NCBI GenBank assembly: GCA_002104905.1 | Contig: MCFE01000091.1 | Coordinates: 62,001 to 126,000, forward strand | Length of the DNA: 64,000 nt | Origin: Basidiobolus meristosporus CBS 931.73 | Lineage: Eukaryota > Fungi > Basidiobolomycota | Direction: 5' to 3' | Shown: positions 8,276 to 62,935 of the stretch, one piece after another | Layout: every line of letters begins with the position of its first letter | Numbering within the stretch: the first letter of the stretch is position 1 | Translations under genes and position numbers: made by a program | Notes under the pieces: model-generated | What the model was told of the DNA's origin: nothing | Databases searched by the model: none | Seen by the model: only the letters and a program-made list of their open reading frames with translations

Positions 8276-9151
8276 TGTTGTAAGAGTCTTGGAGATATTG
8301 GAAGTGACTGGGAGGACAAGTAGATTATGTAGTTTTCACTTAATGATTTATTGAATGTAAAAGTAGTATTTATACTTTTACATTGTCTTGGTAAAAAAAA
8401 CACATAGAATATGTTACAAAAGGTCCCAAAAACATGTGTGCAAAGTTTGGGGCTGTTTGGACAACTGTGAGAATTTTCATTTTCTGGGTACCTGGTATTC
8501 TGGTGAAAATATCCTAAGTCAATCCCAACAAGGAATTTGGTCAGTATTTGCTAGGATTTGAAGGTGATGATCCAAGGGACAAAGTTAGGTGAATATTTAG
8601 GTGGAATTAAGAATTTCTACAACACTCCCACTCAGCTAAATCTTCATACTGACTAGTACTAATTTTGACCTAAGATCTTCAAGCTTGTCTATAGCTAGTG
8701 GACTTGTTCCATCATTCCAGCTGATCATAGTGCCCAATAGTGCCATAGCATGCCAGATGGTGCCTGATCATGCCACAGAGTGCCAGATGGTGCCATACAG
8801 TGCCAATTTGGGATCAAAATTGACATGCATATGACCCTAAAATATCAAATTAATAACAAAATATACAGCACTTTCTGGCACTATGATCAATGGCACAATG
8901 GAACAAGTCTAGTGGTTGGGTATATATGTTTGCAATTGTTTCATCTGAAGGACAGTAAACTAAGCTAACTAAGTTATTCTCTATAGCATCATGTATGAAA
9001 TGATGTCTAATATCTGTGTGCTTAGTTCTAGCATGAAAGTTAGATGTCTGCCTAATGGTAAACATCCTTGTTATCTTGAAATAAAGTAATAGGCGTTTTT
9101 TGACATAGGCCTAAATCGGTAAAAAGCTTTCTTAACCACATTGCTTCTTTT
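8276..9151 (-). mobile_element. Copia-A 3' fragment (RNase H, PPT, 3' LTR 8276-8624)
   Basis: NFHARTKHTDIRHHFIHDAIENN on the minus strand. PPT (reverse complement of ctcccactcagctaaa) is next to LTR-A. Confidence 0.9.
8700..8910. mobile_element. 211-bp MITE with GACTTGTTCCAT terminal inverted repeats and 3-bp TSD AGT
   Basis: Termini ggacttgttccat..atggaacaagtct and internal RTGCCA repeats. Removing it restores Copia gctagtggtt. A near-identical copy sits at 55593-55802. Confidence 0.9.
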
Positions 9152-9500
9152 TGTTGTAAAAATTTGTAATTCCACCTAAATATTCACCTAACTTAGTCAC
9201 TTAGATCATTACCCTTAAATCCTAGAGAATACTGACCAAATTCCTTGTCGGGATTGACTTAGGATATTTTCACCAGAATACCAGGTACCCAGAAAATGAA
9301 AATTCTCACAGTTGTCCAAACAGCCCCAAACTTTGCACACATGTTTTTGGGACCTTTTGTAACATATTCTATGTGTTTTTTTTACCAAGACAATGTAAAA
9401 GTATAAATACTACTTTTACATTCAATAAATCATTAAGTGAAAACTACATAATCTACTTGTCCTCCCAGTCACTTCCAATATCTCCAAGACTCTTACAACA
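9152..9500 (+). mobile_element. Copia-A LTR (349 bp), inverted relative to 8276-8624
   Basis: tgttgtaaaaatttg..ctcttacaaca with TATA box gtataaata and aataaa. Confidence 0.95.
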
Positions 9501-10904
9501 GGAAGAAAGATCCACACCAATTTCCAAAGAGGAGGGAAGATAGCCCTTTTCCAGAAATCCAACTCAGCAATCCAAAAGATTACAGTTGACTCCCCTGTTA
9601 GGACTCATACAGTGAATCCAACCAGTCCTGACAACAGACAATCCAAAGTTGATGCCTTTGCTACCAAAAGACACCTCACTGAAGAAGCTGTCAAACCCAT
9701 CCTCAGAAGACCACAAACTGAAGAGCCTGAAGTTGTCATTGACAAGAGGTCTAGTATGCTGCCCACATTGCCTTGTTCTCAGATGACCTCAAAGATAGCA
9801 AGCTACTCAAGCCCTCAACAGATTACTGAGTAGCTGTTGAAACAGAACCTCACTTTGTTAGTTGGAGAGATCATGAGTATATCCCTGTCTGTTTGGAAGG
9901 CCTTTGATGAGCAGCTTACAATAAGACAACAAGCTGTTGAGCATATGGATACCCATATAATTCAGACAAGCCATGAAGACCATAAAAAGACTGACAATGG
10001 TGCTGGATATAACCTTTTACCCAGTTGCAACTGCTGTGGTGAAAGCATATATATATGATGACCCTGTTGACAGTCATATTGACAGTGGCCCAGAGATTTG
10101 TGTTATGCCACTAGACTTCTGGAAGATACTTAGAAGCAAGGAGCTGCTGCCTGTTGATAGAGATAGTAGTGACTTCAGCAGAGCCATTAATATTGAGGTA
10201 TAGCCTTTGCAGTTGTTCAGCAAGTTGGTCAATTCTGTTGGTAGTAAATGTTTGCTTGTCAGCAACAGCCTCCTTGACTCCTTGGTCAACTGGTCTGGCA
10301 GATTATACTTCAAGAGTCTCATAGAGGTGGAAGTCTGCTCTGCCCCTAGGAGAACATGTTTCATCTCTGCAAAGCAGGGAATGCCAGACTTGTTATCCTT
10401 GGCTGCATGTAGGTCAAATTTCTTTGCCAAGTCCTGGGGAAGTCCTTGTGTAAGGTAACATATGAAGGTAGGCTCAGTTAGAGCCTGTGAGTCTAGGAGT
10501 GGCTCAACTATGTCTTTATATTGTTGAGTGAACTCTTCATGTGGTAGCTTGGAAAGTCCAGTCCTTCCAAAGTGTCTCAGGTCTTCAATTCCATAGTATA
10601 AATGTTGTAAAAAATTTGTATTTCCACCTAAATATTCACCTAACTTAGTCACTTAGATCATTACCTTCATATCTTAGAGAATACTGACCAAATTCCTAGT
10701 CAGGATCTACTTAGAATATTTTCACCAAAATATCAGGTACCCCAAACATGAAAATTCTCAAAGTTGTCCAAACAGCCCCAAACTTTACACACATGTTCTT
10801 GGGACCTTCCTTAACATATTCTACGTGTTTGATATGCCAAGATGATGTAAAAGTATAAATAGTACTTTTACATTCAATAAATCATTAAGTGAAAACTACA
10901 TAAT

Positions 10905-11529
10905 TGACTTGTTCCGTTGGATAGTGCCACATTGAGCCATGAGTACCATATGATGCCATAGTGTGCCAGAGAGGCCAGGTGAGCCTCTACCTGGCCACAG
11001 AGTGTGAAACATAGCTCCGCATCTTCATGCAAAGCAGCCACTGTGTTTCACCCATTGTGTTGGAGAAAATCCATTTTTTGACCTTTTTTTTGGATCAATG
11101 TTGTGCAGGATGTGTTAGAGAACAAGCAGATTGAAGATATGCATCTGGTACTCAATACCCATGGCACTCTGAATCTGGCTTCTGTAGCTTGTATCATGTC
11201 ACAAAAATGAATGGCACTATCTCGGTCCACTGGTACTATCTGGCGCTATATTTAAATATTAGTCCTAAAGTAAGATCTATACAAAGCACTTATAGTGCCA
11301 GATAGTACCAGTGGACCAAGATAGTGCCATTCATTTTTGTGACATGATACAAGCTACAGGAGCTAGAGTCAGAGTGCCATGGGTGAAACACAGGGGCTGC
11401 TTTACATGAAGATGCAGAGCTATGTTTCACACTCTGTGGCCAAGTATAGGCCCACTTGACCTCTCTGGCACACAATGGCATTGTTTGGCACGCATGGCTC
11501 AATGTGGCACTATCCAACGGAACAAGTCT
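10905..11529. mobile_element. 625-bp foldback (hairpin) non-autonomous DNA transposon in the Copia 5' LTR
   Basis: TSD AAT and termini tgacttgttccgttggatagtgcc..ggcactatccaacggaacaagtct. Arms are 10905-11055/11379-11529 and 11158-11250/11291-11383, with a 40-bp loop. It is absent from the 3' LTR. Confidence 0.95.
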
Positions 11530-11580
11530 AATCTACTTGTCCTCCCAATCACCTCCAATATCTCCAAGATTCTTACAACA

Positions 11581-21754: not shown

Positions 21755-23195
21755 GATAACAGTAACTGGCCATCAGGTCAAAGCATATAATATTATCTGC
21801 ATTGTAGCACTGGGAGTCATATGTGGACATTGTAGGAATATTTATTCACAAGTGGATCACCAATGCCAACTTGATGCATCTATGGCTTTTGTTCAGAGTT
21901 TGTGACAAGATTTGAGCAGCTATACTACAAACATAAGCTGAGCACATAGATCTCTGCTGCTACTGTATCCATCTGCTACTCCATCTTGCTTGGTGTATTG
22001 AGAATATTGGGCCTTGCTTCACCTTATAGGAGTTTCTTATGGAGCAGATGTGTAGGGAGATAGGATGACAAGTCAAGTTGCAGGTGCTACCGTATCCTAA
22101 TCTCATCTAGAACATTACCTTCAGGTCAATCACTGATGTGAGGAGATGGCACATTGACAACACCCAGGAAGAGCTAGAAAATACTGAGGACAAATGTGCA
22201 CATGGAGACATCAATGCCTATGGCACTAAGCAGTTAAGCAGCCCCAATGCATGAGTAATCAGTTAAGTAGTGCAAAGTTGGGTTGGGAGCAACAAGCAAC
22301 TGATTTTTACTAGGAGAGCTTTACCAATGTATGCTGGGTTTCTCTTGGTCACACAGCAATTTCTACTCCATTCAATACAAAATTCACATAAGCAAAAGCC
22401 AGAGTGCACCTTTACAGGGGACTAGAATCCAGCAGGGAGAAGGAATATATAGGCTGCATAACAAAAGCTCTTTGTGTATGCTCAGAAGGCATTCATGGTA
22501 AAAGTAGTGGCAGTCAAGTATTTGTTTGCAAGATGTATATGTTACGGGCAATACAAGGTATATGGCAACATTGCAAGTATCATAGTAAAATGCCGTAAAG
22601 TTGAGGTGATAGAAGTATGTCAATAGCAGCAGGTGTGTGTATTAGTAGTGGTTAATAAGCAGGAGGCCATAGTATTTTCTGATTAGGGCCATATGTGGAA
22701 TACCCAGGGCAGTAGTACGTAAGCAAATAAAGAGGGGTGATTCTACAGTGGAATATATGAATTGCACAAGGGGAGGCAGAAAAAGGATATACCACTTGGT
22801 AAATTGGTACTGTAGCATAATAAAGAACTAGCTGTAGGTTGCCATACTGCCAAGATAATACCATCAGGGGCCTGCCAAGAGGCTGTCCAAGCACCATTAA
22901 GTTCTTGCCATATAAGACAATTGGATGTACTTGTGGGTTAGATCCACTCCAATAGTTGTAGGGTGCACTAAGGCAGCAACAATGCAATGTCACCCTTGGC
23001 AAAACACTGTACAAACATCATTGTGTTTTTTAACTCTATTTAGCTGTAAAATTAGCCAAACACTATAGTGATCCCATCATAAGATTGTGTAGATGGTCAT
23101 TAATTCCAAGCTGCTGGTATTATTTTGGTCTCTCAATGGCATCTTCACAGGTGATTGAGATTGGATCCACCCACAGAACCAAATTATATTTCATA
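21755..23195 (+). mobile_element. CACTA/EnSpm-like transposase relic (C-terminal part)
   Basis: IHLLLHLAWCIENIGPCFTL*EFLMEQMCREIG..VKLQVLPYPNL fits the H-LLH..GP..W.FP.ER..PY.NL pattern of CMC/EnSpm (tnp2-type) transposases. It parallels 26700-27720. Confidence 0.7.
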
Positions 23196-24440
23196 GGGTG
23201 GAGTGTAGCACAACTGGCTGCGCTTCCAACTCTTATGAAAACAGCTGCTTTCTTATTGGTAATTCTTTTATGCTATGATGGGAATCAGTCTTTTACAGGC
23301 TTACAGCATTAATTGGCAAAAACTGCAGCTTTTTTCTCATGCTTCCCTGTCTCTGGCTTGGATAGACTTTTTCCCTGTATCATTTTCTATATCACTGCCA
23401 GGTCTTTCACTGTACTTTGTTTGAGTGCTTCTTGTATTGGACTACACTTGCTCCTTAATAAATCCTACTCTGATGCATCTGTTTGGCCTGCTTGTCCCTT
23501 ACTGGCACTCTGCAGGCAACCTGATGCTTTTTTTCCCTCTGGTTTCAAGCTCTCAGCCCATGCTGTGATGGTGCCCCAAAGTAGCCACTGGTTTTTGTCA
23601 TTGCCAGGTCCTTCACTACTACTTTGACTGAGTGCTTCTTGAGTGGAACTATGCTTTTTCCTTGATAAATGTTGTGCAGGTGTATATGTGTCTGCCTACC
23701 TTCCCTTTTTGGCACTCTTCCAGCAACATGATTTATCTTTAATTCTTGTTTAGAGCTTTTGGCCCTGCTTGTAACAGGCTAATGAGGAAGCTGTTGGTCT
23801 TTAACCATTGTACCCTTGTTCTTCTGCTGTAGATAGTTTCCCCAATTCTTACAATACTTTCTTATCATACTAATGCTGGCCCAAAATTCATCTGCTTGTT
23901 TGAGTCCACAACAATGCTTGTGGAGCAAGTCAAGCACATTATGCTTGTCCATGAATACCTGAAGGTCCCAGGGTATGCTGGCTTAAGGTGTTGGCATGCT
24001 AGACTTCTGATGGCCACCTGAGTATTAGCCTACTCTTCATAATTGCACCTAATGGCTTGATGGATCTTCAATTTCTCTTGATATTTAGGCTTTGGTATAA
24101 GTACTACCCCTAAGAAAAAATTGAGAAAAGGCCAGCACAATACCATTGAATTATCAGCTGAATTCCAAGTTGCTCATAATTGACAACTCTCAATATCTCT
24201 GTTCTTAGCTGATGGGCATGAAAGTAAATAAGTTCTCCAGGAGAAGACTAGGCAAACTAACATCCATACTAAATTTGGCAATTAGCTGCCCATTACTTCC
24301 ATCACAAATTGCACTTGAAATTTTGAACCCAAAACACCAGCTAAATATCAACAAAATACCTTTCAAATACCAGCTGAATACCAGCTAAAAGTCAGATGAA
24401 TTCCTAGTTTGAGATTTTTATAGGGTACATTTTCTCACTC
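23196..24440 (-). pseudogene. Degenerate second copy of the unclassified ORF-X plus its upstream region
   Basis: The reverse complement of 23196-24110 aligns with 36625-37550, and 24110-24430 aligns with 33065-33365. Confidence 0.75.
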
Positions 24441-24446
24441 CCATGC

Positions 24447-25290
24447 TGTGATAGGTTTTTCTGTGGGCTTTATCTTGAAGCATTGTTGTTGTGCTTATAA
24501 GACTCTATGGTGCTCCTCTGCTGTTACATCAGGAAATTGCTTAATTCCTGGCAGTGACATTGTGCAACTTGTGTTCCTTCTTTGCAGCAAAGAAACTGGT
24601 TTCTTTACCTGGGATATTGATTGCTCTACACCTTTTATCCACTCATCCTGCTTCTGGACTCTTTCCTGATTTCTCTGGGCCATTGTATCTATCATATCAG
24701 CCACCACACCTAATTGCCTCACTAATGCTACACTATGATCTGACAACATACTTGCTAAAACAAGTGGTGGTGATATTGTGACAGCCACTTGCTGGACTTC
24801 AACTGAGGCTACTGCTTTTGCTACATTCTCATTTGCCTCAGCATTATAGTCAGCTTGCGGCTCCACAGAGATTCCCAATTACCTACTTGAATGAGAGCCT
24901 GAGGAGTTTGCATTATTACCTTGAGTGGGCATACTGTCCACAGGGCTTTTTTAACTCTGCTTGTTGCACTGAAGGTCAAAGCAAGTGGTTGTCCAGCTGT
25001 TCTTCTACTGCTTTCAGTGGTAGGATTTGGTTGGGAACCAGACAGCTTTGCTTACTCTTTGGTGGCATATACATAAAAGAGAGTCAAGCCAAAGGGGAAA
25101 TGGTGTTACATATACATGTGTATGTGGTGCCACAACCTTAATTGTAATGCCCACAATGGCGGGTCATCATTGAATCTTAAATTCAGGTAGGTATAATGTC
25201 CCAAATACAAGACTCTTAAATTCACAGGAGTATTGACAAGAAAATGATATAATAGCAAAACATTGTTATTGCCAAACTGTTTGCCCCTCA
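24447..25290 (-). mobile_element. Unclassified repeat H with a coiled-coil-like ORF relic
   Basis: ORF 24495-24878 (GISVEPQADYNAEANEN..QRNQERVQKQDEWIKG) is homologous to 31034-31480 on the opposite strand. Confidence 0.55.
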
Positions 25291-25309: not shown

Positions 25310-27720
25310 AACACTGTAAGAGAAGGGTGAAAAGACCGTGTGGCTATTATAGCAAGCCTCTTGACCATGGAGTATGCAGACAGCATAGGAAGTACTACAA
25401 GGATCATGGCCAGTGTTTTGCCACACAAGTCAAATTTTACCATTTGCCAGTAACCACTGTACCAACAATATCTTGCTGGCCACTTGGCTCTTTATAATGG
25501 TACCTGGACATACTTGTCACCTTGCGCAAACTGAGTCAGGTGAGTTAATGATGCCTTTAGGCTCACCCTGGCCTTCTCAACATGGAACACAGAGTGATAG
25601 CTCTGAAGAAGCAGGCATCATGATGGCTTGTGAGACTATTTCCCCTAACAACAGTACCCTGCATAAGCCCAGTAATTTATTGCTTGCACTCTGGATATAT
25701 TCTGGTAAAACCCCATCTAAAGAAGCTCATGCAGTCCAACAAGTATTTTGAAGTAATAAAGTACAGCACTTGGTATCAATCAGGTGCAATCATATCTAAT
25801 ATATCTGATGGCAAATATTACAAACAGCTAAGAAGCCAGGGCTACTTTGAGGGTATGTATGACCATGCCTTGCCTTGGCACTTGGTGAATTCTCATCAAA
25901 CAAATACTCTTCAAGCAAAGCCCAAAGGCCACTGATTCTCATCAACCTAAGTGTGCTGCCTATCTTACAGTATCAGAGCAGAAATCAGATGGTAGTCTCA
26001 CTAGTATCTGGGCCTAAATCACTGTCCAACCTGGATAGCTGTATGTGTCCATTGCTGGATCAATTTTGTATGAGTTGCAGTGAGATAACAGTAAATGACT
26101 GTTATGTTAAAGCACATATGGCTATCTGAATTGGAGATACCCCAGCCATCAGCAAGATAGCTGGCTTCTCTGGGCACAATGGACAGTATTGCTGCTGAAT
26201 GTGCAAGATTCAGGGGACTTACTCCATGACCCACACACATTATTATTACCCAAACACCAGCACTAGGATGATTGTGTTCCTGCCAAGTGAACACACAGAA
26301 GTCAGCGTTCATTTGCAGCAAAGTTGGCAAGCTATAAGCCATTGGCCAGAGAATGGAACTAATCAGAAGCCAGAGATACTTAAGATAGAGGGTATCTTTT
26401 AGAGCAAAACCTTCCCACTGCAAGCAATGCGTTTGCCTTTCAATAATATAGCTATACTGATGACCATGCTGTGCTTAGGGCATTTCAAGCTCAATGAGCC
26501 CTTTGAAATAATGGAGAAACTTGCAAGAATTGGGAAGACATATAGAGTATCTACTATCCTAAGTACTTCTCACAGGCCCCTATCAACATTCATACACATA
26601 TGCTACATTACAAGTGAGTGGACAGTATGAACTGGATAAGTATTTATTCAAGTGGCCTTCTGAAGCCATTTCTACCAGTAGCAATTTGGAAGCATTAGAA
26701 GTCATATATGGAAATTGTAGCAATGTTTATTTAGAAGGGGATCACCAATGCCAACTTGATGCATCTACAGCTTTTGCACAAGAAGTGTATGTCAGGATTT
26801 GAGCAGCTAAACTACAAATATAAAGCTGAGCATGTAAATCTCCGCTGCTACAGTATCCATTTGTTACTCCATCTTGCAGGGTGTATTGACAATATTGGAC
26901 CTTGCTTCATCTTTTGGGAGTTTCCTATGGAGACACCTATGCCTATGGCATTAAGAAGCTAAGCAGCCCCAGTGTGTGAGTAAACAGTTAAGTAGTGCAA
27001 AGTTGGGTTGGGTGCAACAAGTATCTAATTTTTATTAGGAAAACTCAGCTAAAGTATGCCAAGTTTCTCTTGGTCACCATCAAATTTCTACACCATTCAA
27101 TACAAAATTCACCTAAATAAGTGCCAAAGGGCACCTATATGGGGGGCTTGAATCTAGCAGGGAGAAGGAATACATAGGCTAAATACCAAAAAGTTCTTTG
27201 CAAATATTAAGGATGCATGCATGGTAGAAGTACTGGCCACCATGCATTTGTCTGCAAGATGTTTATGTTACCAGCAATATGGGATATATGGCAACTTTGC
27301 AAGTACTGCACTAAAAAGCCACAAAGTTGAAGTGATAGTAGTATGTCAATTGCGGCACATGGGTGAAATTGTAGAGGTTAGTAAACAGGAGGTCATAATT
27401 TTTACCATATACGGCAATTTGAAGTACTAGCCAGTTAGATCCACTCAGATAACTGCAGAGTACACCAAGACCACAACAATGCCATGCCACTCATGGCAAA
27501 ACACCATCCAAGTACTGTAAAGTTTTAACTTTATTTGGAGGTAAACTGGCCAAACACTGTTATAATCCCATCATAAAACTGTGTAGAGGGTCATTAATTC
27601 CAGCCTATTAGTAGTATCACAGTCTTCTGACAGGACTGTGATGACTGATCTGGATTTGATCTGCCTGCAGGACTAAATTATTTCTCATGAGGTAGCTTAG
27701 TTATGCAAGATTTTTCAACA
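25310..27720 (+). mobile_element. CACTA/EnSpm-like transposase relic, second copy
   Basis: LVSGPKSLSNLDSCMCPLLDQF..GDTPAISKIAGFSGHNGQYCC*MCKIQG and YSIHLLLHLAGCIDNIGPCFIFWEFPME match the GP..P..L.PL, GD.PA..K..GF.GH..C..C and LLH..GP..W.FP motifs. Confidence 0.75.
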
Positions 27721-31033: not shown

Positions 31034-31480
31034 AATGTGGCGCCATATATGCATATTCATACAGCACTATCTCACCTTTGGCTTGACTCACCTCCACATA
31101 TGCCACTAAAGAATAAAGTAAAGCTGTCTGGTTTGCAACCAGACCCCACTGTAAACAATAGCAGAAAAACAAGCAGACAGCAACATGTGTGGAAATTTAT
31201 TTCAGCAAGCAGGGCTATGTCCATTGATGACCATACTAACATTGTGACCACTGAAGGCAGTGCAGACTCTTCAGGCTCTCCTTCAAGTAGACAGTTGGGA
31301 ATCTCTGTGGAGTCACAAGATGACCATAATGCTCAGGCAGATGAGAATATGGCACATGCAATTTCTCTGATGAAAGACCAGCATGTGGTCTTCATAACAT
31401 CACTATCACCAGAAACTGCAAGTTTGCTCTTAGCTGATACCAAAGCATTAAGGAGGCAATGAGGTGGAGTGGGTGCAGAG
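31034..31480 (+). mobile_element. Repeat H fragment
   Basis: LGISVESQDDHNAQADENMA matches MGISVEPQADYNAEANENVA at 24495-24878. Confidence 0.6.
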
Positions 31481-31511
31481 AAGCATATCACATCAAGGGA
31501 GGGAGAGATGG

Positions 31512-34195: not shown

Positions 34196-34199
34196 TGAG

Positions 34200-35982: not shown

Positions 35983-36009
35983 GCGGCATTGCATACACAA
36001 TTTGAGCAG

Positions 36010-37834: not shown

Positions 37835-40800
37835 TGTTACAAGTCTTGGTATAAGAGTTGTAGAGGAATAGGGAGTTTAGCTAGTATTGTATTCACTAAA
37901 ACTTGAACTGATTTTTATTGAGGTTCCAGCATCTCCTTATATACATTTTGCCAAATCAATTGCTGACTAATTGTATTTCCTAATGTAGGTTGTGGCTGAT
38001 GACTCATTGAATGCATCATCATCACCCAATAAGATCCTACTTAATATATCTATTTCTGTCTGATAAGGATCTGCTGATTCATTTGCTGACTAATGCTACT
38101 GATTTCATAGATAATACTGATATACTGATAACCTAAACATATACTAATTGATTTGACTAAAAACTGATCTAACTTAAACTTTCAAGCGGCAGATCATAAC
38201 ATTCTCCCCTACTAAAGTTGAGAGGGTTCTCCTGAATCTCTTTTCTTGCAATACCAATATCTTGATGGTTCAGTATTATCAGCAAGTCTTGCAAGCCTGA
38301 GTCTGTCCCTATGCACTAAGTCTTTCCAGATATTGCCTTGTTTGTCCACCAGTTGGTAAGTTGCAAATGGACATTCTCTGATGATCTTGAATGGTCCTGT
38401 CCATTGTGGCTCAAACTTCTTCCAAGTGTTGTTTCTTAGCAATACAAAGTTCCCAACTGTCAATGCTTCTGGTGCTATAGTCTTATCAAATCTCTGCTTC
38501 ATCATTTCTGCGCTTTGAGATACTTTGGTCTGTGCCTCTTGACGTCTTTGTTCCAGTTGCTGGTGTCTACTTGGTTGACTGAGTTCATCTTCTAAGGTGT
38601 CTGTAAGTTTTGGTTGTGTGAGATCTCCTGGAATCCTTGGTTCACATCCATAAACTAAGTAAAATGGTTATTGCTGGGTGGTGTTGTGTACTCTGAATCT
38701 GCATGCAAAGAGTGCTTGGTCTATATACTCATCCCATCTAATGACAACTCCATTTGCATACTTGGTCAGCATTTTTCCAAATAATCCATTAAACCGCTCA
38801 GTGACTCCATTAGTTCTGGGGTGATATGCCAAGGTTCTCAAGTGTCTGATCTGCTGCATTTCCAGGTAAGCCTCTAATGTCTTTGCCATAAAGTTTGCAC
38901 CTCTATTGGATAAGATCTCCACAGAGCATCCAAACTTCATCAGGATCTCATGGTAAATGAAACTTGCAACTTCTTTTTCACTGGCTATTGGTACAGCTTT
39001 AGCAACTGGCCATTTAGTGGCATGGTCAATTGCTACTAGGATCCAACGGTGTGGTGGTGTAGAGGTACTCCTGGGAGAAGCTACACAACTCAAGGTGTGT
39101 GAGGTGTCTGATGGGTTCAATAACCTCTGTGTCTAAACTGCTGGTGTCTTTGTCAATATGTCACTATGGTAAAAGCTCCTGCTTCTCTAGCTTCCTAGGT
39201 GCTCCAAGTGTCTCCAAAGGCCTCTGTGTGTCTTGTGCACTACCCTGAAAAGCTCCTTGATGGCAGGTCTGAGATGTACTGTTGAAGGCAAGTGCAGTGA
39301 TCAACTGCTAATCAATAAGGTAGAAGTGTTACTGATAGAAGGGATGATTTATTGATGAGGGATTGCTTTCCCTTAAATACTTTTCCTGATTGCCAAGTGA
39401 TTACTAATGACAAGGTTCTAGAAGATTCTAGGTATCAGTGGAATTCTTGATGACATCACTATGAGCTAAAAATATGCCAAGAATGTCCTGGAAGGTTTTA
39501 AAAGGCACAGCACATTCAACCAATCAGGAATCATTAGTCTGAAACCTGTGCAACATAGAAATACCATATATGGTATTGAAATGGTAGGGATGGTAACACA
39601 GACCTGGGTCATGTGTCACAGGTACTGACGCGGGTACTTGCCTTATATAGATACATCTACTGATCACAAAGCTGAATAACATCTGGGATAACTAATGCTA
39701 ATAACTAATCAGGGTAAACATCATATGGGGATAATACTGATAATATGGGCAAAAGAAGAATGGGATAATACTGATAAGATAAAATATGGATAAGTATATC
39801 ATAATGACTATATGAATTAACTTGTCTGTGGGAGGTATGTTTACCCTACCACAACAGTTGCATTTCCTGGTAGCTGGCAGTCTTCCAATAAAGTCAATTC
39901 CCCATCTCTCAAATGGTCTTACAGGCTCCAAAGGGAAGAGTTTGCCAATTCTTTGTGGCTGGCCTTGATTGATTTGGCAGTTTGGGCATGTTTTTACTAG
40001 CTTCTCAATGACTTGTTTCATTCTGGGCCACCATGCTCTGGCTTTCACAAGGCTATAGGTTCCTTCAATCCCAAGATGTCCATATCCATTGTGTAGCTTA
40101 TGTATTAAATCCAGGCGAGCAACATAAGGACAATAGGCAATAGGGCTTCCATCAACAATTCAGTAGAGTGTTTCATTCTGTACAACAAATTTGCTGGCTT
40201 CATCATGGATTATCTTCTTGATATCTTCATCCACCTCATTAGGAATGGCTTGGTCCTCCAAGTACTTTGGTAATAGGCTAGGCCAATCTGATTCATGCAC
40301 CAAGTTGAGTTGTGCAACTTGATCTAATCTTGATAAGGCATCAGCTACCGTGTTGTTTTTTCCAGGACAGTAGACAATCTCCAGGTCAAATTGCTGAATG
40401 TATTCACTCCATCTTGTCATTCTTCTAGAGAGTACCTTCTGAGTAAATATATACTTGAGGGAGGCATGATCAGTCTTCACAGTGCATTTAACTCCTTCAA
40501 TATAGCATCTCCATGTCTTCAAACAGTGTATTATAGCAAGCATCTCCTTCTGATGGACTGGATAGTTTTGTTCTGCTGAGTTCAGTTTCTTGGATTCAAA
40601 GGCAACAGGGTAGTCCTTTCCCTTGTGTTCTTGGCTCAGCACTCCACCAATTACATAATCTGAAGCATCTGTGCACAGAGTGAACTCTTTTCTGAAGTCT
40701 GGTATTCTTAAGCTTGGCAGCTTAGCAAGTTCATTCTTTAGCGTCTGGAAGGCAGTCTCACAAGCTATGTCCCACTTGTAGGTATTGTCTTTCTTGAGGA

Positions 40801-43578
40801 TATGAGTTAAAGGGGCTGCAATACTTGCAAATGACTTGACAAATCTCCGGTAATAGGAAACCATTCCAAGGAAGGATCTGAGCTCTGATATGCTATGGGG
40901 CTGCTTCAAATTCTTGATTACTTCCACCTTCTTAGGGTCTAAGGTTACTCCTGTGCTAGTCACTATTTGTCCCAGATATTCTATGTGTTCCTTGAAGAAT
41001 TCACACTTGGCTAGCTTGCCATATAGCTTGTTCTCTCTTAGTTTCTTCAAGACCTTTTCAATGTGCACCATGTGATCCTTTTCTGTCTTGCTGTATATCA
41101 ATATGTCATCCAGGTAGATTATCACAAAGTTGTTTTAGTACTCCTGAAAGACAGTCTGCATCAGCGTCATGAATGTTGCAGGGGCATTAGTGAGGCCAAA
41201 ACTCATGACTAAGTACTCGTAATGTCCATATCTGGTCCTGAATGCTGTCTTAGGGATATCTTCTGGTTTCACCCTAATCTGGTTGTATCCTGACATGAGG
41301 ACAATCTTGCTGAAAATAGTGGCTCCATTAAGTTGGTCCAAAAGCTCATCAATCCGAGGTATGGGGTACTTATTCTTGACGGTAACTGAGTTCAGGGCTC
41401 TGTAGTCAATGCACATCCTAAGTGTTCCATCCTTCTTTTTCACAAAAAGCACTGAAGCTCCCCAAGGTGACTTGCTGGGCCTGATGTATCCTTGCTCCAA
41501 TAGCTGATCAATTTGTCTCTTCATTTCCTCCAATTCCAATGGACTCATTCTGTAAGGTGTCTTGCTCACTGGAGGGCTATCTCCTGTGTCAATGGCATGA
41601 TCCATGTCTCTGACTGGTGGTAGGCTTACAAGCTCATCTGGAAACACATCTGAATATTTCTTCAAGAGAGCCTGGACCTGCTGGGGTGCTGGGGTAGAGG
41701 AATCCTCCTGTAATACCGCCATGAGGAACATCTCAGTACCTTTTCTAAGTGCTCTACAGAACTGGGTCTTGCTAAGTTCACTTTTCTCACACACACTGGA
41801 ATTGACCAAGTTGAAATCCAGCATGGCAGGTAATAACTCATAGGTCTTGTTGTCTTTTTGGATCTGAGTAGCATGGGTTCTCCAGTTGATTGATGGATTA
41901 CAACAAAATAGCCAGGTTTTTCCAAGTACAAGGTCAAACTTGCAGTTCCCAAAAATATAAGCCTGTAGGTCTTCTTCATAGTCATTGATCCTCATTCTTA
42001 CTGGCTGGGTAATACGGTTGATTATGTGGGAGTTCCCATCAGCTGTGGAAACTGAAGTTGATTTGGTAGGTTCCAAGTTGATTCCAGCTTTCAAAGCAAA
42101 TTGCTCTGACATGTACTCATGCGATGCTCCTGAGTCAATCATGATCTTGGCAGGTACTCCATTGATTACTCCATTTAAGTACAATAACTTCCCTGAGTTT
42201 GAAGTCATTTGGGACAAGTACTCTTCTGTCATATGGAAGGTGAATTCTGAGTCTTCTTCAAGCTCATCTTCCACATTACTGTGTTCATGGGACTCAATAT
42301 GGCTGAAGGTTCTTGTTGGCTGGTGTCCATTTCTTCTCTGAGGGCAGTACTTTGCAATATGTCCCTGCTGGTGGCAATTGAAGCAAAGTCCTCTCTTCTT
42401 GCATTCTTCTGAGGAGGGATTCTTCTGCATAGCGTCTATTTCCATTGGTACTGCTTCTGATTGTCTTCTTTCATAATGATTATAGCCTTTCTGATTAGTC
42501 AATGTAGGCCTCCTAACTCCAAACATAGCTGAGTCATAGTCAATGGCAATCTTGATGGCTTCTTCAATAGTCTGAGGTCTTTGGTAATTGACTTCCTTGC
42601 AAGTTCTTTCTTTCAACCCATCAATAAATTATTCAACTTGATCCAAGGGGTCCATTCTTTCAATTTGTCCAAGTAGACATCTGTACTCATAGATGTATTC
42701 TTGCACCATTCCTTTCTGTCTGAGTGTCTTTAACTTCCTTCTTAGTAGTGTCTGCTGGTGTGGAGGTTCAAAAGCATCCTGAATTTCCGACACAAACTCA
42801 TCCCAGGTAGAGATTGTAGAGCATCCCATCATAGTAGCTGACCTGATCTTGTTGTGGTACCACTGTAAAGCTGCATCTGCCAGGTAAGAAGCTGCATAAT
42901 GCAACTTGCTCTCTGGAGCAATTCCTTTAGCTTTAAAAGCTTCTTCAATCTGAAAGAGCCAAGTTCCCAGTTTTCATTGACTCTGCCATGGTACCAGTTG
43001 ACCTTCACACTAAAGTTGCTCTTGACGGGGCTTTGCTGGCTCTGAGCCATGGTAGTCACTCCTTGTTGCTGTTGGCTGAGGATCTGGAGTAGCTGCTGCT
43101 GTTGGGCCAGGATTTGCTGCATGGCATTCTTCCATTCTTGATTGTCCGACATCTTGAGGGTGGTTTCTTCTTTCTTCAGGAGGGAGGTTTCTGGTTATTG
43201 CTGCTACCAATGTTACAAGTCTTGGTATAAGAGTTGTAGAGGAATAGGAAGTTTAGCTAGTATTGTATTCACTAAAACTTGAACGGATTTTTATTGAGGT
43301 TCCAGCATCTCCTTATATACATTTTGCCAGATCAATTGCTGACTAATTGTATTTCCTAATGTAGGTTGTGGGTGATGACTCATTTGATTGCATCATCATC
43401 ACCCAATAAGATCCTACTTAATATATCTATTTCTGTCTGATAAGGATCTGCTGATTCATTTGCTGACTAATGCTACTGATTTCATAGATAATACTGATAT
43501 ACTGATAACCTAAACATATACTAATTGATTTGACTAAAAACTGATCTAACTTAAACATTCAAGCAGCAGATCATAACA
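37835..43578 (-). mobile_element. Full-length Ty3/Gypsy family C element (5' LTR 43211-43578, gag-pol 43152-38212, 3' LTR 37835-38201)
   Basis: 4-bp TSD TGGG, PBS TTGGTAGCAGC, PPT tagtaggggagaa. [18 protein letters not shown], protease [34 protein letters not shown], RNase H TDASDYVIGGVLSQ, integrase PFERWGIDFIG, GPY/F-like WTGPFKI. No chromodomain is seen. About 8 differences between the LTRs by eye. Confidence 0.97.
39050..39853 (-). mobile_element. Solo LTR, family E (804 bp), inserted in the Gypsy-C integrase
   Basis: TGTGGT..ACCACA termini and a 4-bp TSD ACGG/ACAG. Removing it restores ggatccaacagttgc (compare 59771-59790). Confidence 0.92.
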
Positions 43579-44605
43579 TGGGAACTAGTAAATGAGCAGT
43601 GGCATAGAGCCATTGGTTTCCTGCCAAAGCTGTGGAACCAGAGCATTACAGCAGAAATACTGATTGACTAGTGGATTTTAATGGAATTACTAGTTGAGTG
43701 TGCAGTTGAGCTTAATGTTGGTGTAGGGTATAGGGACTTGTATAGGTTAATAAAATTGGCAATTGAGGTACAACAGAGTTTCAACAGAATTAAATCAACT
43801 TGTACACATGAAAAGTAGAGAAACAGGTGAGTCAGGAAGTAAGGAGTGCAAAAAAGAGTCAATAGCCAATCAATGCACACAAATATAGGAGGTGATAGAG
43901 TATCTGAGATCAGAAAGTGAGCAAATTGGCAGGGGACCAATTGACAGTCACTTATACACTGTTCCGATGAAAAATTTTGGCTATGCTTTTTGTGAATTCT
44001 GGGGTTCAATTATTGTTCAACAATCTCTGGACAGTGTCCTAACAGGATCAATACCTCTTAGTCATGGGACTTGGACTTTGTGATGGCCTTTTGATGGGAT
44101 CATTACAATAGCTTTTCATAGTGTATATATGTGCCCTACTCATTACTCTAGCAGAACTGGATATCTCAGAGAGTTGACAGCAATGAAAGAATTGGAATTA
44201 AAGTGGTGGCATGAGCTCTACATCAAGATGCCAGCAGATTTATATACAAAGATCTATAACCAGACAAGTATTGAAGTCCAGAATGAACCAAGAGTGAGGG
44301 GATTTGATGAGGTAGCCATAAAAGAAAAATTCCACGTGCAATCTGAACTCTACAGGCCAGATGTGCTTGCTTGTGCCTCAACTTTGGGAACTAAAGAGAT
44401 TTTAAATGTGTTTTGCAATAATTGATTAATCTACAATATGATATATTAGTGGAGCCAAGTGGCTTCCAAGAGCAAAATATGCAGGACTTGTCAAGGAGCA
44501 GCTCAATAGTATCAGACAGAGGTTAGCATATACACTAAGAAATCAGAAGGTGAGCTTCAAGAGAAAAAATACAGACTGCAAGCAACTGCATCTAGATTGC
44601 ACCAG

Positions 44606-52242: not shown

Positions 52243-55200
52243 TGTTATGATCTACCACTTGAATGTTTAGGTTAGATCAGCTTTTAGTCAAATCAATTAG
52301 TTATATGGTAAGCCTATCAGTAAATCAGTGTTATCTATCAAATCAGTAGTATTAGTCAGCAAATGAAAGATCAGATCCTTATCAGACAGAAATAGGTATA
52401 TTATGCAGGATCTTATTGGGTGATGATAATGCAATCAAATGACTCATCAGTTACAACCTACATTAGGCAATACAATTAGTCAGCAATTGATTTGGCAAAA
52501 TGTATGTAAGGAGCTGCTGGAACCTCAATACAAATCAGTTCAAGTTTTTGTGATTACAATACTGGCTAAACTCTGCTTTCCTCTACAACTCTTATATCAA
52601 GACTTGTAACATTGGTAGCAGCAATAATCAGAAACTTCCCCAAGAAAGAAGCAGCCTTCCTCAAGATGTTCAATAATGAAGTATGGAAGAATACTATGCA
52701 GCAGATCCTGGCCCAGCAGCAGCAGTTACTCCAGATCCTTAGCCAGCTACAGCAAGTAATGACTACCATGGCCCAAAGCCAGCAAAACCCTGTCAGTAGC
52801 AACTTTGGTGTGAAGGTCAAAGAGTACCATGGTAAAGTCAATGAAGACATGGGAACCTGGCTCTTTCAGATTGGAGAAGCTTTCAAGGCTGGGGGAGTTG
52901 CTGCAGAAATAAGTTACATTATGCAGCCTCTTACCTGGCAGATTCAGCTTTACAGTGGTACTATTACTAGATCAGCTCAGCCACCATGATGGGATGCTCT
53001 ACAATCTCTACCTGGGGTGAGTTTGTGCTGGAAATTCAGATTGCTTTTGAACATCAACACCAGCAGTCACTGCCAAGAAGAAAGTTGAAGACACTCTGAA
53101 AGAAAGGAATGATTCAAGAGTACTTCTATTAATATAAATATCTACTTGGTCATATTGAAAGAATGAACCCCTGGATCAAGTGGAATACTTTATTGATTGA
53201 TTGAAATATAGAACTTGCAAAGAAGTGAATTATCAAAGACATCAGACAATTGAAGAAGCCATCAAGATTGCTGTTGACTATGACTCAGCTATGTTTGGAG
53301 TTGGGGAGCCCACAAAGACTAATCAGAGAGGCTACAATCACAATGAAAGAAGACAATCAGAAGCAGTGCCAATGGATATAGATTCTATGCAGAAGAATTC
53401 TCCCACTGAAGAATGCAAGAAAAAAGGAATTTGCTATAATTGCCACCAGCAGGAAAATATTGCAAAGTGCTGCCATTGGGGGAGAAACAGTCACTAGCCA
53501 TCAAGAACCTTCAACCATGTTGAGACCCTTGAGCATAGTAACATTTGGGGATGAGCTTGAAGAAGACTCAGAACTCACCTTCCATATGACAGAAGAATAC
53601 CTATCCCAGATGGCCTTGAACACAGGAAAGCTACTATATTTGAATGGAGTAATTGATGGAGTGCCTGCCAAGATTGTGATTGACTCAGGAGCATTGCATG
53701 AGTACATGTCAGAGCAATTTGCTTTGAAGGCTGGAATCAACTTGGAAACCAACAAATCAACTTTATTGCCAACAGCAGAAGGGAACTCTCATATAATCAA
53801 CTATATTACACAGCTACTGAGGATAAAGATCAATAACTATGAAGATGACCTATATGCCTATATGTTTGGGAACTGCAGGTTTGACCTTTTACCTGGAAAA
53901 ATCTAGCTAATCCTTCCACTCCAGCACCCCAGAAGGTCCCGGCCCCCTTGAAGGAACATTCAGATGTATTCCCAGATGAACTTGCAAACCTACCACAAGT
54001 CAGAAATGTATATCATGCCATTAACACAAGAGATAGCACACCAGTGAGTAAGACACCTTACAGAATGAGTCCATTGAAGTTGGAAGGGATGAAGAGATAA
54101 GTTGATCATTTATTAGAGCAAGGATATATCAGACCCAGCAAGTCACCTAGGGGAGCACCAGTGCTTTTGTGAAAAAGAAGGATGGAGAACTTAGACTGTG
54201 CATTAATTACAGAGACCTCAACTTGGTTACCATGAAGAATAAGTACCCTATTCCTTGGATTGATGAGCTTTTGAACTAACTCTATGGAGCTGCCATATCC
54301 TGAAAGATTGGCCTTATAACAGGATACTATCAGATTAGGGTGAGACAGAAGTCATCCCTAAGACAGCATTCAGGACTAGTTATGGATATTGCAAGTACTT
54401 AGTCATCAGTTTTGGCCTTGCCAATGCCCTTGCAACATTCATGGCCTTGTTGTAGACTGTCTTACAGGAGTACTTTGAAAAGATTGTGATAATCTACCTA
54501 GATGACATACTGATATACACCAGGACAGAAGAGGATCACTTGATCCACATTGAAAAGGTCTTGAAGAAGGTAAGAGAGAACAAGCTATATGGAAAGCTGC
54601 CCAAATGCAAATTCTTCAAGGAACAAATTGAATATCTGGGACACATAGTGACTAGTGCAGGAGTGATCTTAGACCATAAGAAGGCTAAAGTTATCAAGAA
54701 TCTCAAGCATCCCTATAGCATAATAGAACTCAGATCATTCCATGGAATGGTCTCCTTTTGTTGGAGATTTGTCAAGTCCTTTGCAAGTATTGCAGCCCCT
54801 TTGACCAATATCCTCAAGAAAGACAACACCTTCAAGTGGGACAAAGCCTGTGAGACTGCCTCTTAGACTCTCAAAAATGAACTTGCTAAACTGCCACACT
54901 TAAGAATACCTGACTTCAGAGAGAGTTTACTTTGAGCACAGATGCTTCAGATTATGCAATTGGGGGAGTGTTGAGCCAAGAACACAAGGGAAAGGACTGC
55001 CCAGCTGCCTCTGAATACAAGAAACTGAACTCAGCAGAACAGAACTTTCCAGTGCAGGAGAAGGAGATGTTTGCTATAATTCACTGCTTGAAGACATGGA
55101 GATGCTATATAGAAGGAGCCATATGCACTGTGACAACTGATCATGCCTCCCTCAAATATATATTTACTCAGAAGGTACTCTGCAGAAGTATGACAAGAAG

Positions 55201-57140
55201 GAGTGAATAAACTCAGCAATTTGATTTGGAGATTGTCCACTGCCCCAGGAAAAACAACACTTATGACTTATGGGATATAGCCAGCGCAACTGCCTTATGG
55301 ATGCTCAAGAAGGAACTTGCTAAGCCACCAAGTTTAGGAATACCAGACTTCAGAAAAGTGTTTACTTTATGCACAGCTGCTTCAGACTATGCAATTGATA
55401 GAGTACTGAGCCAAGAACATGAGGGAAAGGACTAACCAAGTGCATTTGAGTAGAATAAACTGCACCAAGCAGAATAAAGCAATTCAGTGCATGAAAAGGA
55501 GATACTTTCCATAATACACTGCTTGAAGACCTGGAGATATTGCATTGAAGGAGTCAGGTGCAAACTGTCCATGCCTCACTCAAGTATACATTGGACTTGT
55601 TCCATCATTCCAGCTGATCATAGTGCCCAATTGTGCCATAGCATGCCAGATGGAGCATCATCATGCCACAGAGTGCCGGATGCGCCATACAGTGCCAATT
55701 TGGGATCAAAATTGACATGCATATGACCCTAAAATATCAAATTAATAACAAGATATACAGCACTTTCTGGCACTATGATCAATGGCACAATGGAACAAGT
55801 CTATTTACTCAGAAGGTACTATCAGAAGAATGTCAAGATGGAGTGGATAAATTCAGCAATTTGACTTGCAGATTGTCTACTGTCCTGGGAAAAGCAATAC
55901 AGTTGCTGATGCCTTATCAAGATTAGAACAAGTTGCACAACGCAACCTGGTGCATGTATTGGATTGGCCTAGCTTATTACGAAAGTACTTGGATGACTAA
56001 GCCATTCATAATGAGTTAGATGAAGAGATTAACAAGAAAATCCAGGATGAAGCCAGCAAACCATTAATACAGGATTGAAAACTCCACCAAATTGTTGATG
56101 GAAGCCATATTGCCTATTGCCCTTATGTTGCTTGCCTAGATTTGATGCATAAGCTACACAAGGTATATGGACATCTTTGAATTGAAAGAACTTATAGCTG
56201 TGGGAATGCCAGAGCATGGTGTCCAAGAATGAAGCAAGATATTGAGAAGCTAGTGATAAAATGTCCAAATTGCCAAAACAACCAAGACAACCACTAAGAG
56301 TTATTTACTCTTTCTCCTGGAGCCTGTAGGATCATTTGAGAGATGAGGAACTGACTTTACTGGAAGACTGCCAACCACTAGGAAATACAACTTTTGGATA
56401 CTAGTAGGAATTGAACATGCCACTATATGAACCATGGTGAAAGCAGTACCTGTAGCCATTGAACAAGAAGTTATAGTATGTATCTACCAAAAGATCCTTA
56501 CAAAGCTTAGATGCCCTGTAAAAACTTCATCCAATTGAGGAGCAAGCTTTGTGGCAAAGACGTTGGAAGTTTAGCTAGAAACAAGGCAGATCAAACACTT
56601 AACAACCCTGGCATATCACCCTAGAACTAATGGAGTCACTGAGAGGTTTAATTGATTATTTGGAAAAGCACTGACCAAGTATGCAAATGCAGCAGTCAGT
56701 AGATGGGATGAGTATTTGGACTAAGCACTTCTTGCCTGCTGACTCAGAGTGCATACCATCACCAAACAATAGCCATTTTACTTGGTGTATGGATGCAAAA
56801 CAAGGATCCCTGGAGATCTAACACAACCAAAGCTTACAGATGCCTCAGAAGATGAGCTCAGCCAGCCAAGTAGATACCAGCAGCTGAAACAAAGATATCA
56901 GGAGGCACAGGTCAAAGTATTGCAAAGTGATACAAAGTCAAAGCAGAGATATAATAAAATTATATCACCAGAAGCATTGATAGTGGGCATATTTGTATTG
57001 CTGAGAACAACACTTGGAAGAAGTTTGAGCCACTGTGGACAGGATGTTTCAAAATCATTAGAGAATGTCTTTTGGAACTTGTCAACTAGTGGACAAGCAA
57101 GATATTACCTGGGAAGATTTAGTGATAGTTACCATCCTGG
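52243..57140 (+). mobile_element. Gypsy-C copy with 5' LTR (52243-52611), gag, PR, RT, a duplicated RNase H and integrase; no 3' LTR
   Basis: PBS at 52612 and peptides YLDDILIY and TDASDYAIGGVLSQ. Collinear with the reverse complement of 38212-43578. Confidence 0.9.
55593..55802. mobile_element. 210-bp MITE, GACTTGTTCCAT TIR, TSD ATT
   Basis: Near-identical to 8700-8910. Removing it restores the Gypsy sequence caagtatacatttactcag. Confidence 0.9.
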
Positions 57141-61500: not shown

Positions 61501-61848
61501 GCTGCTTGGATTAGTCATTGTGAGCTTCCCAACTCCAATCATAGCTGAGTCACAGTCAATGGCAATCTTGATGGCTTCTTCAATAGTCTGGGGTCTTTGA
61601 TAATTCACTTCCTTGCAAGTTCTTTCTTTCAACTAATCAGTAAAATATTCCACTTGATCCAGGGAGTCCATTCTTTGAATTTGTCTAAGTAGACATCTGT
61701 ATTCACAGATGTACTCTTGAACCATTCCTCTCTGTCTGAATGTCTTCAACTTTCTTCTTAGTAGTGTCTGCTAGTGTGGAGGTTCAAAAGCATTCTGAAT
61801 TTCCAACACAAACTCATCCCAGGTAGAGATTGTAGAGCATCCCATCAT
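58552..61848 (-). mobile_element. Gypsy-C copy, 5'-truncated with internal deletions; 3' LTR 58552-58921
   Basis: PPT next to 58922. gag [15 protein letters not shown], protease IDSRALHEY, integrase HPRTNGVTE. Confidence 0.9.
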
Positions 61849-62129
61849 GGGAATGTATAAAAATGTATGGATTTTATGGAAAATGTGATAAAAGATGAAT
61901 TTTTATCACAAAACAAATAATTACCAACTGCAACATACCAATTATGTGATGATACAACAATGCTAACAAATGGAACAAACTATATGTTGTTTAATGTACA
62001 ACAATTTTTCTATTATATTTGTAGGAAGAAGAATACAGGCAAAAAGAAGGAGAAGGAGGAAAACAAGGTTTAGTAAGATAAACAGTTAAAACTAAAACAA
62101 GGGTTGCAGATAAATAAGGCAGTAGAAAC

Positions 62130-62366
62130 TGTTGTAAAAATTTGTATTTCCACCTAAATATTCACCTAACTTAGTCACTTAGATCATTACCCTCAAATCC
62201 TAGAGAATACTGACCAAATTCCTTGTCGGGATTTACTTAGAATATTTTCACCAAAATACCAGGTACCCAGAACATGAAAATTCTCAAAGTTGTCTAAACA
62301 GCCCCAAACTTTGCACACATGTTCTTGGGACCTTCCTTAACCTATTCTACGTGTTTGTAATGCCAA
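62130..62366 (+). mobile_element. Copia-A LTR, 3'-truncated
   Basis: tgttgtaaaaatttgtatttccacc..gtgtttgtaatgccaa, joined directly to the foldback element. Confidence 0.9.
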
Positions 62367-62935
62367 ATCAATTTTTTAACCTTTTTTTTGGGATCAAAAT
62401 TGAGCATGATGTAAAAGAGCACAGACAGACTGAAGATATACATCTGGTACATAATACCTATGGCACTCTAAGTCTAGCCCCACAGGCTTGTAGCATGTCA
62501 CAAAAATGCATGGCACTATCTTGGTCCACTGGTACTATCTGGCACTATACTTAATTATTTGCCCTAAAGTAAGATCCATACAAAGCATTTATAGTACCAG
62601 ATAGCACCAGTGGACCAAGATAGTACCATGCATTTTTGTGACATGGTACAAGCCACAGGAGCTAGATTCAGAGTGCCATGGGTATTGAGCACCTAATGCA
62701 TGACTTCAATCCTTTTATGCTCTTACACATCCTGCACAAAACTGACCTAAAAAAAAGGTCAAAAAATGGATTTTCTCCAACACAATGGGTGAAACACAGG
62801 GGCAGCTTTGCATGAAGATGCAGAGCTATGTATCACACTCTGTGGCCATGTATAGGCTCACTTGGCCTCTCCGGCACACTAGGGCATTATTTCGCACTCA
62901 TGGCTCAATGTGGCACTATACAATGGAACAAGTCA
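62367..62935. mobile_element. Left-truncated foldback element of the 10905-11529 family
   Basis: Same 40-bp loop, inner arms, and a complete right arm ending atggaacaagtca. Confidence 0.9.

Follow-up and report, generated by a model that had tools for sequence, protein, structure and literature searches.

The closest described system to the elements reported here is Pangu, which is listed in Repbase as Harbinger2. Han et al. (2015, Mob DNA 6:12, PMC4482050) described Pangu as generating 5'-ANT-3' duplications and as having inverted ends of 11-40 bp that usually start with AG or GG. According to the same authors, autonomous Pangu elements encode a bare DDE transposase and a second ORF of approximately 170-590 aa without a known domain, and the group was placed next to bacterial IS5, with the A-N-T target common to both (PMC4482050). 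A 199-bp Pangu MITE family, Pangu_PStr, has already been published, and the fungi represented in Table S3 of that study are Melampsora, Puccinia, Talaromyces, Tremella, and Tuber (PMC4482050). An earlier note on the present DNA had attributed ANT duplications to the Pangu group, which is correct according to Han et al. (PMC4482050). The window analyzed here, a 64-kb stretch of the genome of Basidiobolus meristosporus CBS 931.73, holds a set of elements that we consider quite likely to be a cut-and-paste family of the Pangu (Repbase Harbinger2) group in the PIF/Harbinger-ISL2EU-Spy superfamily.

Exact matches to the motif GACTTGTTCC numbered 9 in the 64-kb window compared to 0.18 expected, and 0 of 100 shuffles reached 9 matches. 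Eight of the 9 were transposon ends: 2 each on MITE1, MITE2, and the hairpin element FB1, 1 at the right end of the hairpin FB2, and a lone end at position 32801. All 8 ends read NGACTTGTTCC, with N being A in 4 cases and G or T in 2 cases each, which agrees with the earlier description of the outermost base as G, T, or A. The family end is (A/G/T)GACTTGTTCC, an 11-bp terminus common to all 8. The earlier note had placed one terminus on the MITEs, the foldbacks, and 32801, and was confirmed with its coordinates right; it overlooked the ninth match, at 36802. That match was considered as a terminus and rejected as a chance occurrence because it lies inside a 230-aa ORF in a coding-type context, is mutated to GACTTGCTCC in its paralog (23922-23931), and is not surrounded by a motif cluster in an RTGCCA scan of the window.

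An AGTGCCA-type subterminal repeat was present at each of the 8 ends. The density of RTGCCA was 8.8-38 per kb in the elements compared to 2.0 per kb in the window, a 4- to 19-fold enrichment that bears out the claim that this motif is repeated in all of the elements. When the window was scanned in 200-bp bins, those with at least 5 RTGCCA motifs were solely from these elements. Shared sequence also connects individual members of the set: MITE1 has a 16-nt double motif in common with the transposase-copy end at 32801 and a 17-nt internal stretch in common with FB2.

MITE1 (8700-8910, 211 bp) has the ends GGACTTGTTCC...GGAACAAGTCT, contains 8 RTGCCA motifs, and is flanked by AGT at 8697-8699 and 8911-8913. 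MITE2 (55593-55802, 210 bp) is of the same subfamily, with 96.2% identity to MITE1, and is flanked by ATT at 55590-55592 and 55803-55805. The inverted ends of the MITEs reach approximately 40 bp, imperfectly. FB1 (10905-11529) is a 625-bp non-autonomous hairpin flanked by AAT at 10902-10904 and 11530-11532. Each of the 3 triplets was single-copy in 3 to 7 paralogous empty sites of the same window. AGT was found once in each of 4 paralogous empty sites for MITE1, ATT once in each of 3 paralogs of MITE2 in gypsy-type copies (40487-40419, 60410-60346, and 55125-55193), and AAT once in each of 7 paralogs of FB1 in a copia-type LTR. The duplications AGT, ATT, and AAT that had been read from the filled sites are thus borne out by the empty ones. 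Comparison of filled and empty sites identified all 3 complete elements, a small sample, as precise insertions with a 3-bp A-N-T duplication; the lone end at 32801 is also preceded by ATT. The elements are real insertions, with one terminus family, into older retrotransposon copies.

The length of the duplication can be read in another way, with 4 or 5 bp duplicated (TANT or TANTA-like) and GACTTGTTCC as the true end. TAGTG is present on both sides of MITE1, a T precedes the target triplet in the empty-site paralogs at 4 of 4 sites, and a T adjoins the right end in all 3 complete elements, so a 4-bp TANT duplication fits three sites. However, the 5-bp TANTA duplication was rejected for the window because the flanks disagree for MITE2 (CATTG vs TATTT) and FB1 (TAATT vs TAATC). 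The odd left base is G in both MITEs despite their different targets, which argues that this base travels with the element, and a 4-bp duplication needs an extra base at one end only, which would be unexpected of a symmetric transposase complex. A 3-bp duplication makes both ends read NGACTTGTTCC, matching the AG or GG start published for Pangu. We therefore regard a 4- or 5-bp duplication as quite improbable. The outermost bases of the 2 ends were non-complementary in all 3 complete elements (G/A, G/A, and T/A), and asymmetric integration, or one nucleotide carried over at the ends, is a very improbable reading of these sites. Such sites could arise if TANT (4 bp) were duplicated and one side carried an extra base, or if the first-strand cut were offset. 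If this were true, the asymmetric integration would represent a variation of mechanism inside the PHIS superfamily and not a plain point mutation at position 1.

The hairpin elements were examined for the extent of their arms. The left arm of FB1 is complete (approximately 366 bp) and its right arm is short by approximately 107 bp; the inverted arms match over 150 nt at 91% and over 94 nt at 95%, and the DNA fold had an energy of -259 kcal/mol (z = -29). FB2 (62367-62935) is a left-truncated copy of the FB1 hairpin family that has the right end only, with approximately 162 bp missing from its left arm. Its right arm is intact, which implies a full hairpin length of approximately 730 bp. A 347-nt segment of FB2 is 88% complementary to the left arm of FB1. 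The right flank of FB2 is AGA, not A-N-T, and has no partner flank for comparison. Like fold-back MITEs, FB1 and FB2 are nearly perfect long inverted repeats with a loop of approximately 40 nt. The family terminus and the target duplication delimit them, they moved as single units, and there is nothing unusual about them among fold-back MITEs.

In the copy that carries a transposase, the left end (32801-33365, plus strand) has the terminus AGACTTGTTCC and a GTGCCA subterminal cluster, and includes the region 3' of the transposase. This end interrupts a gypsy LTR after ATT (32798-32800); paralogs of the LTR read ...TATATT followed directly by AAGTAGG..., so that homology stops exactly at the 32801 terminus. 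The remainder of the interrupted LTR was found in the window only within complete LTRs. The transposase pseudogene (33366-34158, minus strand) matched DDE_Tnp_4 (Pfam, E 3.7e-9), which supports the claim that the gene near the terminus is of PHIS type. It consists of three reading-frame pieces, with two frameshifts and at least three in-frame stops; of its catalytic residues, the first D has changed to N and the second D and E are conserved. In tblastn, the relic aligned with residues 8-272 of the 294 residues of a related transposase, P0001, at 49-53% identity (combined E 9e-61), and P0001 found no second DDE_Tnp_4 relic in the window. The last aligned codon lies 565 bp from the 32801 terminus. 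The earlier placement of a DDE_Tnp_4 relic approximately 600 bp from this terminus holds for both domain and distance; the relic itself is near full-length and not a small fragment.

Upstream of the transposase, the region 34159-34911 (minus strand) is contiguous with the relic and is cut at 34912 by an inverted LTR copy pair. It is probably still part of the transposase element, with an uncertain extent, and paralogs of its segment 34571-34907 are present at 22843-23198 and at 27406-27688. For the right terminus of this copy, the window had no reverse-strand match to the motif even with one mismatch, no further RTGCCA cluster, and no inverted copy of 32801-33056. This transposase copy is truncated and dead. 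Since neither the far end nor the second gene can be recovered from the window, a single end connects the terminus with the transposase.

That link would be lost if 32801-33056 were a non-autonomous fragment lying by accident beside the relic of a different Harbinger-type family, in which case another transposase would drive the MITEs and hairpins. Such a juxtaposition would suit a region in which nested and rearranged repeats form a mosaic and a copy with no right end present in the window. The 256 bp by the terminus (32801-33056) occurred only once in the window, and the sole paralog of the adjacent segment (33057-33370), at 24102-24426, is without these 256 bp. However, this paralog is also colinear with the gypsy sequence left of the terminus (25134-24698 with 31036-31475, and 24463-24433 with 31476-31506), so its appearance is that of a segmental duplicate from which a deletion has removed the terminus and its surroundings, and not of an independent copy with a different end. 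There was no repeat boundary or duplication at 33056/33057 and no repeat boundary from 33057 to the transposase gene. The transposase type, the AG-starting terminus, and the A-N-T target all fit one described group. Taken together, these data make an accidental juxtaposition unlikely, and we favor a single element that includes both the terminus and the transposase.

The 11-bp end and subterminal motif common to the MITEs and the hairpins suggest, at the level of sequence, that one transposase lineage may mobilize both. Intact copies at other genomic sites would produce a DDE transposase of the relic type (34158-33366), and a second element-encoded protein could possibly assist it. The transposase would recognize the subterminal RTGCCA repeats as well as the 11-bp terminus itself, excise the element, and insert it at an A-N-T target opened by cuts staggered by 3 bases. 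Neither the 210-bp MITEs nor the hairpins of approximately 730 bp encode anything; they retain the terminus and the candidate binding-site repeats and so would be moved in trans. Harbinger elements with MITE derivatives are represented by Pong and mPing, and the trans-mobilized MITEs of that system, which keep only the ends, resemble the situation proposed here.

Relatives of the transposase (P0001-P0003) had Pfam matches to DDE_Tnp_4 and DDE_Tnp_1 only. They also matched the bacterial IS5 model NF033581 with E values of 1e-12 to 1e-15, a match far under the NCBIfam cut-off (55 vs 140 bits). Relatives of P0001 were found neither in a metagenome scan nor among solved structures. The metagenome matches to terminus plus motif were attributed to chance; the sole inverted pair (L067) was an assembly palindrome on an unrelated G+C-rich bacterial contig. 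Between the relic and the 230-aa ORF (36625-37317) are 2.4 kb that include an LTR insertion. This ORF had no Pfam match, its ESM Atlas matches were unnamed fungal clusters only, and the paralog at 22843-24426 has it in a different order with respect to the other segments. In the ORFs around the relic and in P0001-P0003, Pfam identified no Myb/SANT or MADF domain, and no THAP or YqaJ domains were found in these proteins.

Several properties of the family are those of Pangu. The 3-bp ANT duplications were confirmed by paralogous empty sites, the short inverted ends are within 11-40 bp with AG or GG as first bases, and the transposase is of the DDE_Tnp_4/DDE_Tnp_1 type, approximately 300 aa, with similarity to IS5 and no other domains. 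Short non-coding derivatives and presence in fungi are further likenesses. In contrast to the published families, long hairpin derivatives of approximately 730 bp occur here and the outermost base varies (A, G, or T). The terminus and the host lineage are both absent from the 34 families of Table S3 of Han et al. The suggestion that the family may be undescribed applies at most to this particular family, whereas its kind has been described. Bacterial IS5 shares the A-N-T target and a related transposase core (NF033581, E 1e-15, below the family cut-off); however, the element here is eukaryotic, with long subterminal repeat arrays and with MITE and hairpin derivatives.

A canonical PIF/Harbinger family with Tourist-like MITEs, such as Pong/mPing, would agree with the present elements in Pfam domain, transposase superfamily, duplication length (3 bp), and the occurrence of MITE derivatives. 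However, canonical Harbinger elements have a TWA (TAA/TTA) duplication and a Myb/SANT-type partner ORF. None of AGT, ATT, and AAT is TWA, and the ORFs neighboring the relic included none of the Myb/SANT or MADF type. Harbinger ends typically start with GG(G/C), whereas the ends here start with AG. A canonical Harbinger family in place of Pangu is accordingly exceedingly unlikely. The other groups of the superfamily also differ from these elements: the 3-bp duplication at all 3 complete elements is neither the 2-bp AT duplication of ISL2EU, which has THAP/YqaJ genes, nor the absence of duplication in Spy, and the targets AGT, ATT, and AAT, with flanks T_G, T_T, and T_C, are not the CWG or C|TNA|G targets of Nuwa I/II. 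The Pangu group remains the assignment that we favor.

The family is ordinary for a repeat-rich genome and fits the already described Pangu/Harbinger2 group, and knowledge of how such elements work is unchanged by the finding. It extends the annotation of a genome very rich in repeats and represents a group of transposons that has received little study, here in a fungal lineage unsampled by Han et al. (2015). The RTGCCA repeats are supplied as candidate transposase-binding repeats, together with small hairpin and MITE substrates that are usable in a transposition assay. With three insertions for which it contains both the filled site and empty counterparts, the window is a self-contained record of the mobility of this family.

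Nine matches to GACTTGTTCC were found on both strands of the whole window, compared to 0.18 expected, and 8 of these were ends of elements located where the earlier note had placed them. Both ends carried it in 2 short non-coding elements, MITE1 (8700-8910) and MITE2 (55593-55802), and in a hairpin (fold-back) element, FB1 (10905-11529). A second hairpin element, FB2, carried it at its right end (62935); the eighth end, at 32801, was a left end with no partner. In an alignment of the 8 ends, GACTTGTTCC was invariant, the base before it was A (4), G (2), or T (2), and an AGTGCCA-type repeat came after it. RTGCCA density was 8.8-38 per kb in the elements compared to 2.0 per kb in the window, where 200-bp bins with at least 5 copies coincided with these elements only. 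The earlier description of one terminus with repeated RTGCCA motifs and a variable outermost base (G, T, or A) on MITEs, fold-backs, and the 32801 end was thus borne out. The ninth match, at 36802-36811, was rejected as a terminus and ascribed to chance because it lies inside a 230-aa ORF, its paralog at 23922-23931 reads GACTTGCTCC, and no motif cluster accompanies it.

Since the insertion hosts are themselves repeats, the window contains paralogous empty sites, that is, host-repeat copies without the element. The flanks of each complete element were joined with a single triplet and aligned to window paralogs, and they aligned straight through the junction in 4 paralogs for MITE1, 3 for MITE2, and 7 for FB1. 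The filled MITE1 site reads GCT-AGT-[G GACTTG...CAAGTC T]-AGT-GGT and its empty paralogs GCT-AAT-GGT; MITE2 has ATT on both sides (empty, TAT-ATT-TAC), and FB1 has AAT on both sides (empty, CAT-AAT-CTA). Three bp was the sole length at which both duplication copies matched in all 3 complete elements, a set (n = 3) too small for a logo. The A-N-T duplications proposed from the sequence (AGT, ATT, and AAT, respectively) therefore held when tested against empty sites. A 5-bp duplication fits MITE1 (TAGTG/TAGTG) but fails for MITE2 (CATTG/TATTT) and FB1 (TAATT/TAATC). The same left outer G is present in both MITEs despite their different targets, which assigns it to the element. A 4-bp duplication, TANT, is still formally compatible with three sites, as T invariably adjoins the right end and also precedes the target in all 4 reconstructed targets; however, it would need an extra base at one end only. 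The non-complementary outermost bases of the two ends, together with the T before every target, are slightly odd and are most simply explained by a position-1 mutation plus a target preference. FB2 has a single flank, AGA, with no partner or empty site for comparison.

MITE1 and MITE2 were 96.2% identical, and MITE ends paired imperfectly across approximately 40 bp. The FB1 hairpin had arms of 150 nt (91%) and 94 nt (95%) with a 40-nt loop, and its fold was -259 kcal/mol (z = -29). The left arm of FB1 was colinear with the right arm of FB2 (347 nt, 88%), and approximately 107 nt of this left arm were missing from the right arm of FB1, which together indicate a full length of approximately 730 bp for the hairpin family. 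FB1 is a deletion derivative; FB2 lacks approximately 162 bp on its left. MITE1 had a 16-nt double motif beyond the terminus in common with the transposase-copy end and a 17-nt internal stretch in common with FB2; otherwise, the terminus and the motif array were all that the three subfamilies had in common. Such limited sharing is usual for trans-mobilized elements. FB1 and FB2 each adjoin an LTR of one copia-type family, equally oriented in both cases (10595-10904 and 62121-62366), and their right flanks differ. The LTR at FB2 ends 64 bp short of the FB1 insertion site, beside the arm lacking 162 bp. A single old insertion may have been duplicated along with its host and then have suffered a 226-bp deletion; alternatively, the shared LTR context could reflect site preference.

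An ORF at 33543-33854 on the minus strand matched DDE_Tnp_4 (E 3.7e-9). Used as a query against 1.84 billion representative proteins, it yielded a 294-aa relative, P0001 (E 6.7e-24, 52% identity), and the 376-aa P0002. By tblastn with P0001, this decayed transposase copy was nearly full length, with residues 8-77 at 34158-33949, 80-101 at 33943-33878, and 100-272 at 33884-33366, all on the minus strand; a second relic of this type was not found in the window. The three pieces are in 3 different frames with in-frame stops, and the first catalytic aspartate is lost (LNTF vs LDTF in P0001), with the GS..D and RVEH motifs retained. The terminus at 32801 is separated from the 3' end of the relic by 565 bp, close to the approximately 600 bp noted earlier.

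The 32801 terminus interrupts a gypsy LTR: the gypsy element at 37835-43579 has 368-bp LTRs, and 32640-32800 corresponds to their positions 1-161. In four LTR paralogs, TATATT is followed by AAGTAGG, whereas the window reads TACATT followed by AGACTTGTTCC at 32801; because the paralogs run on uninterrupted there, this end marks a genuine insertion boundary following ATT. The right terminus of the transposase copy and the remainder of the interrupted LTR were looked for and were absent from the window, where the putative link between terminus and transposase rests on one end. Metagenome scans for relatives of the family gave nothing relevant. Beyond the gene, the locus is interrupted by a 1.7-kb inverted LTR pair (34912-36606) without a duplication, which suggests a rearrangement where the transposon copy is broken, and further on by the gypsy element at 37835-43579, with its TGGG duplication. 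The inverted pair consists of two head-to-head LTR-like copies, 84% complementary, with ends TGTGGTGG...CCACCACA.

A paralog at 22843-24426 (reverse orientation) contains 33057-33370 (from the 3' end of the transposase region), 36632-37537 (the 230-aa ORF), and 34571-34907, in that order and without gaps. It lacks both the transposase and the 256 bp carrying the terminus, which might have implied an accidental juxtaposition of terminus and gene. Its colinearity extends, however, to gypsy sequence left of the terminus (25134-24698 with 31036-31475; 24463-24433 with 31476-31506), so that it does not look like an independent copy with another end. Compared with 31036-37537, 22843-25134 is probably an old segmental duplicate (70-79% identity) from which 31507-33056 and the gene have since been lost; the two remaining segments are in swapped order. 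The 230-aa ORF (36625-37317) had no Pfam match, and its only Atlas matches were unnamed fungal clusters; it is possibly the second ORF of the transposon. It recurs at 23199-24100 (79% identity) and has an internal 150-bp tandem duplication (36993-37141/37200-37348).

The window is eukaryotic and nearly all repeats, with 40% G+C, nested retrotransposons of the copia and gypsy types in several copies, and nothing pointing to a human contig. CpG observed/expected was 0.12 across the repeats (TG+CA excess 1.34), a strong depletion compared to the near-normal 0.71 in the first 4 kb (1-4000), which holds a ThiF-family host gene fragment (159-848, minus strand). The gypsy-type element at 37835-43579 (minus strand) is young (LTR identity 98%; TGGG duplication), codes for protease, RT, and RNase H, and contains an 805-bp LTR-like insertion (39049-39853) 97% identical to 31659-32462. 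A 2.55-kb inverted duplication at 7611-10165 (1014-nt arms, 99% complementary) has MITE1 in its 527-bp spacer and the empty version of the FB1 insertion site in both arms.

Han et al. (2015, PMC4482050) defined the Pangu group, which is Harbinger2 of Repbase (Kojima 2025, PMC12730594), by 5'-ANT-3' duplications that paralogous empty sites confirm and by inverted ends, 11-40 bp long, that usually begin with AG or GG. Autonomous copies of approximately 3.5 kb combine a bare DDE transposase with a second ORF in which no known domain is present, and Pangu adjoins bacterial IS5 in their tree. The duplication, ends, and transposase type of the window family all agree with this definition, as does the attribution of ANT duplications to Pangu in the earlier note, and P0001-P0003, the protein relatives of the relic, match the IS5 model NF033581 (E 1e-12 to 1e-15). 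In contrast, its duplication lies outside the definitions of canonical Harbinger, ISL2EU, Spy, and Nuwa. Large PIF/Harbinger expansions are reported in Basidiobolus (Muszewska et al. 2017, PMC5751038); none of the 34 families in Table S3 of Han et al. (2015, PMC4482050), where five hosts are fungal and a MITE family of 199 bp also appears, is from the Basidiobolus lineage. The suggestion that the family may be undescribed holds at most for the family itself and not for its kind: it is a real, new family of a described kind, probably Pangu by duplication, ends, and transposase type. The non-complementary outermost base, together with the T before every target, is the one slightly odd detail of an otherwise known kind of element.
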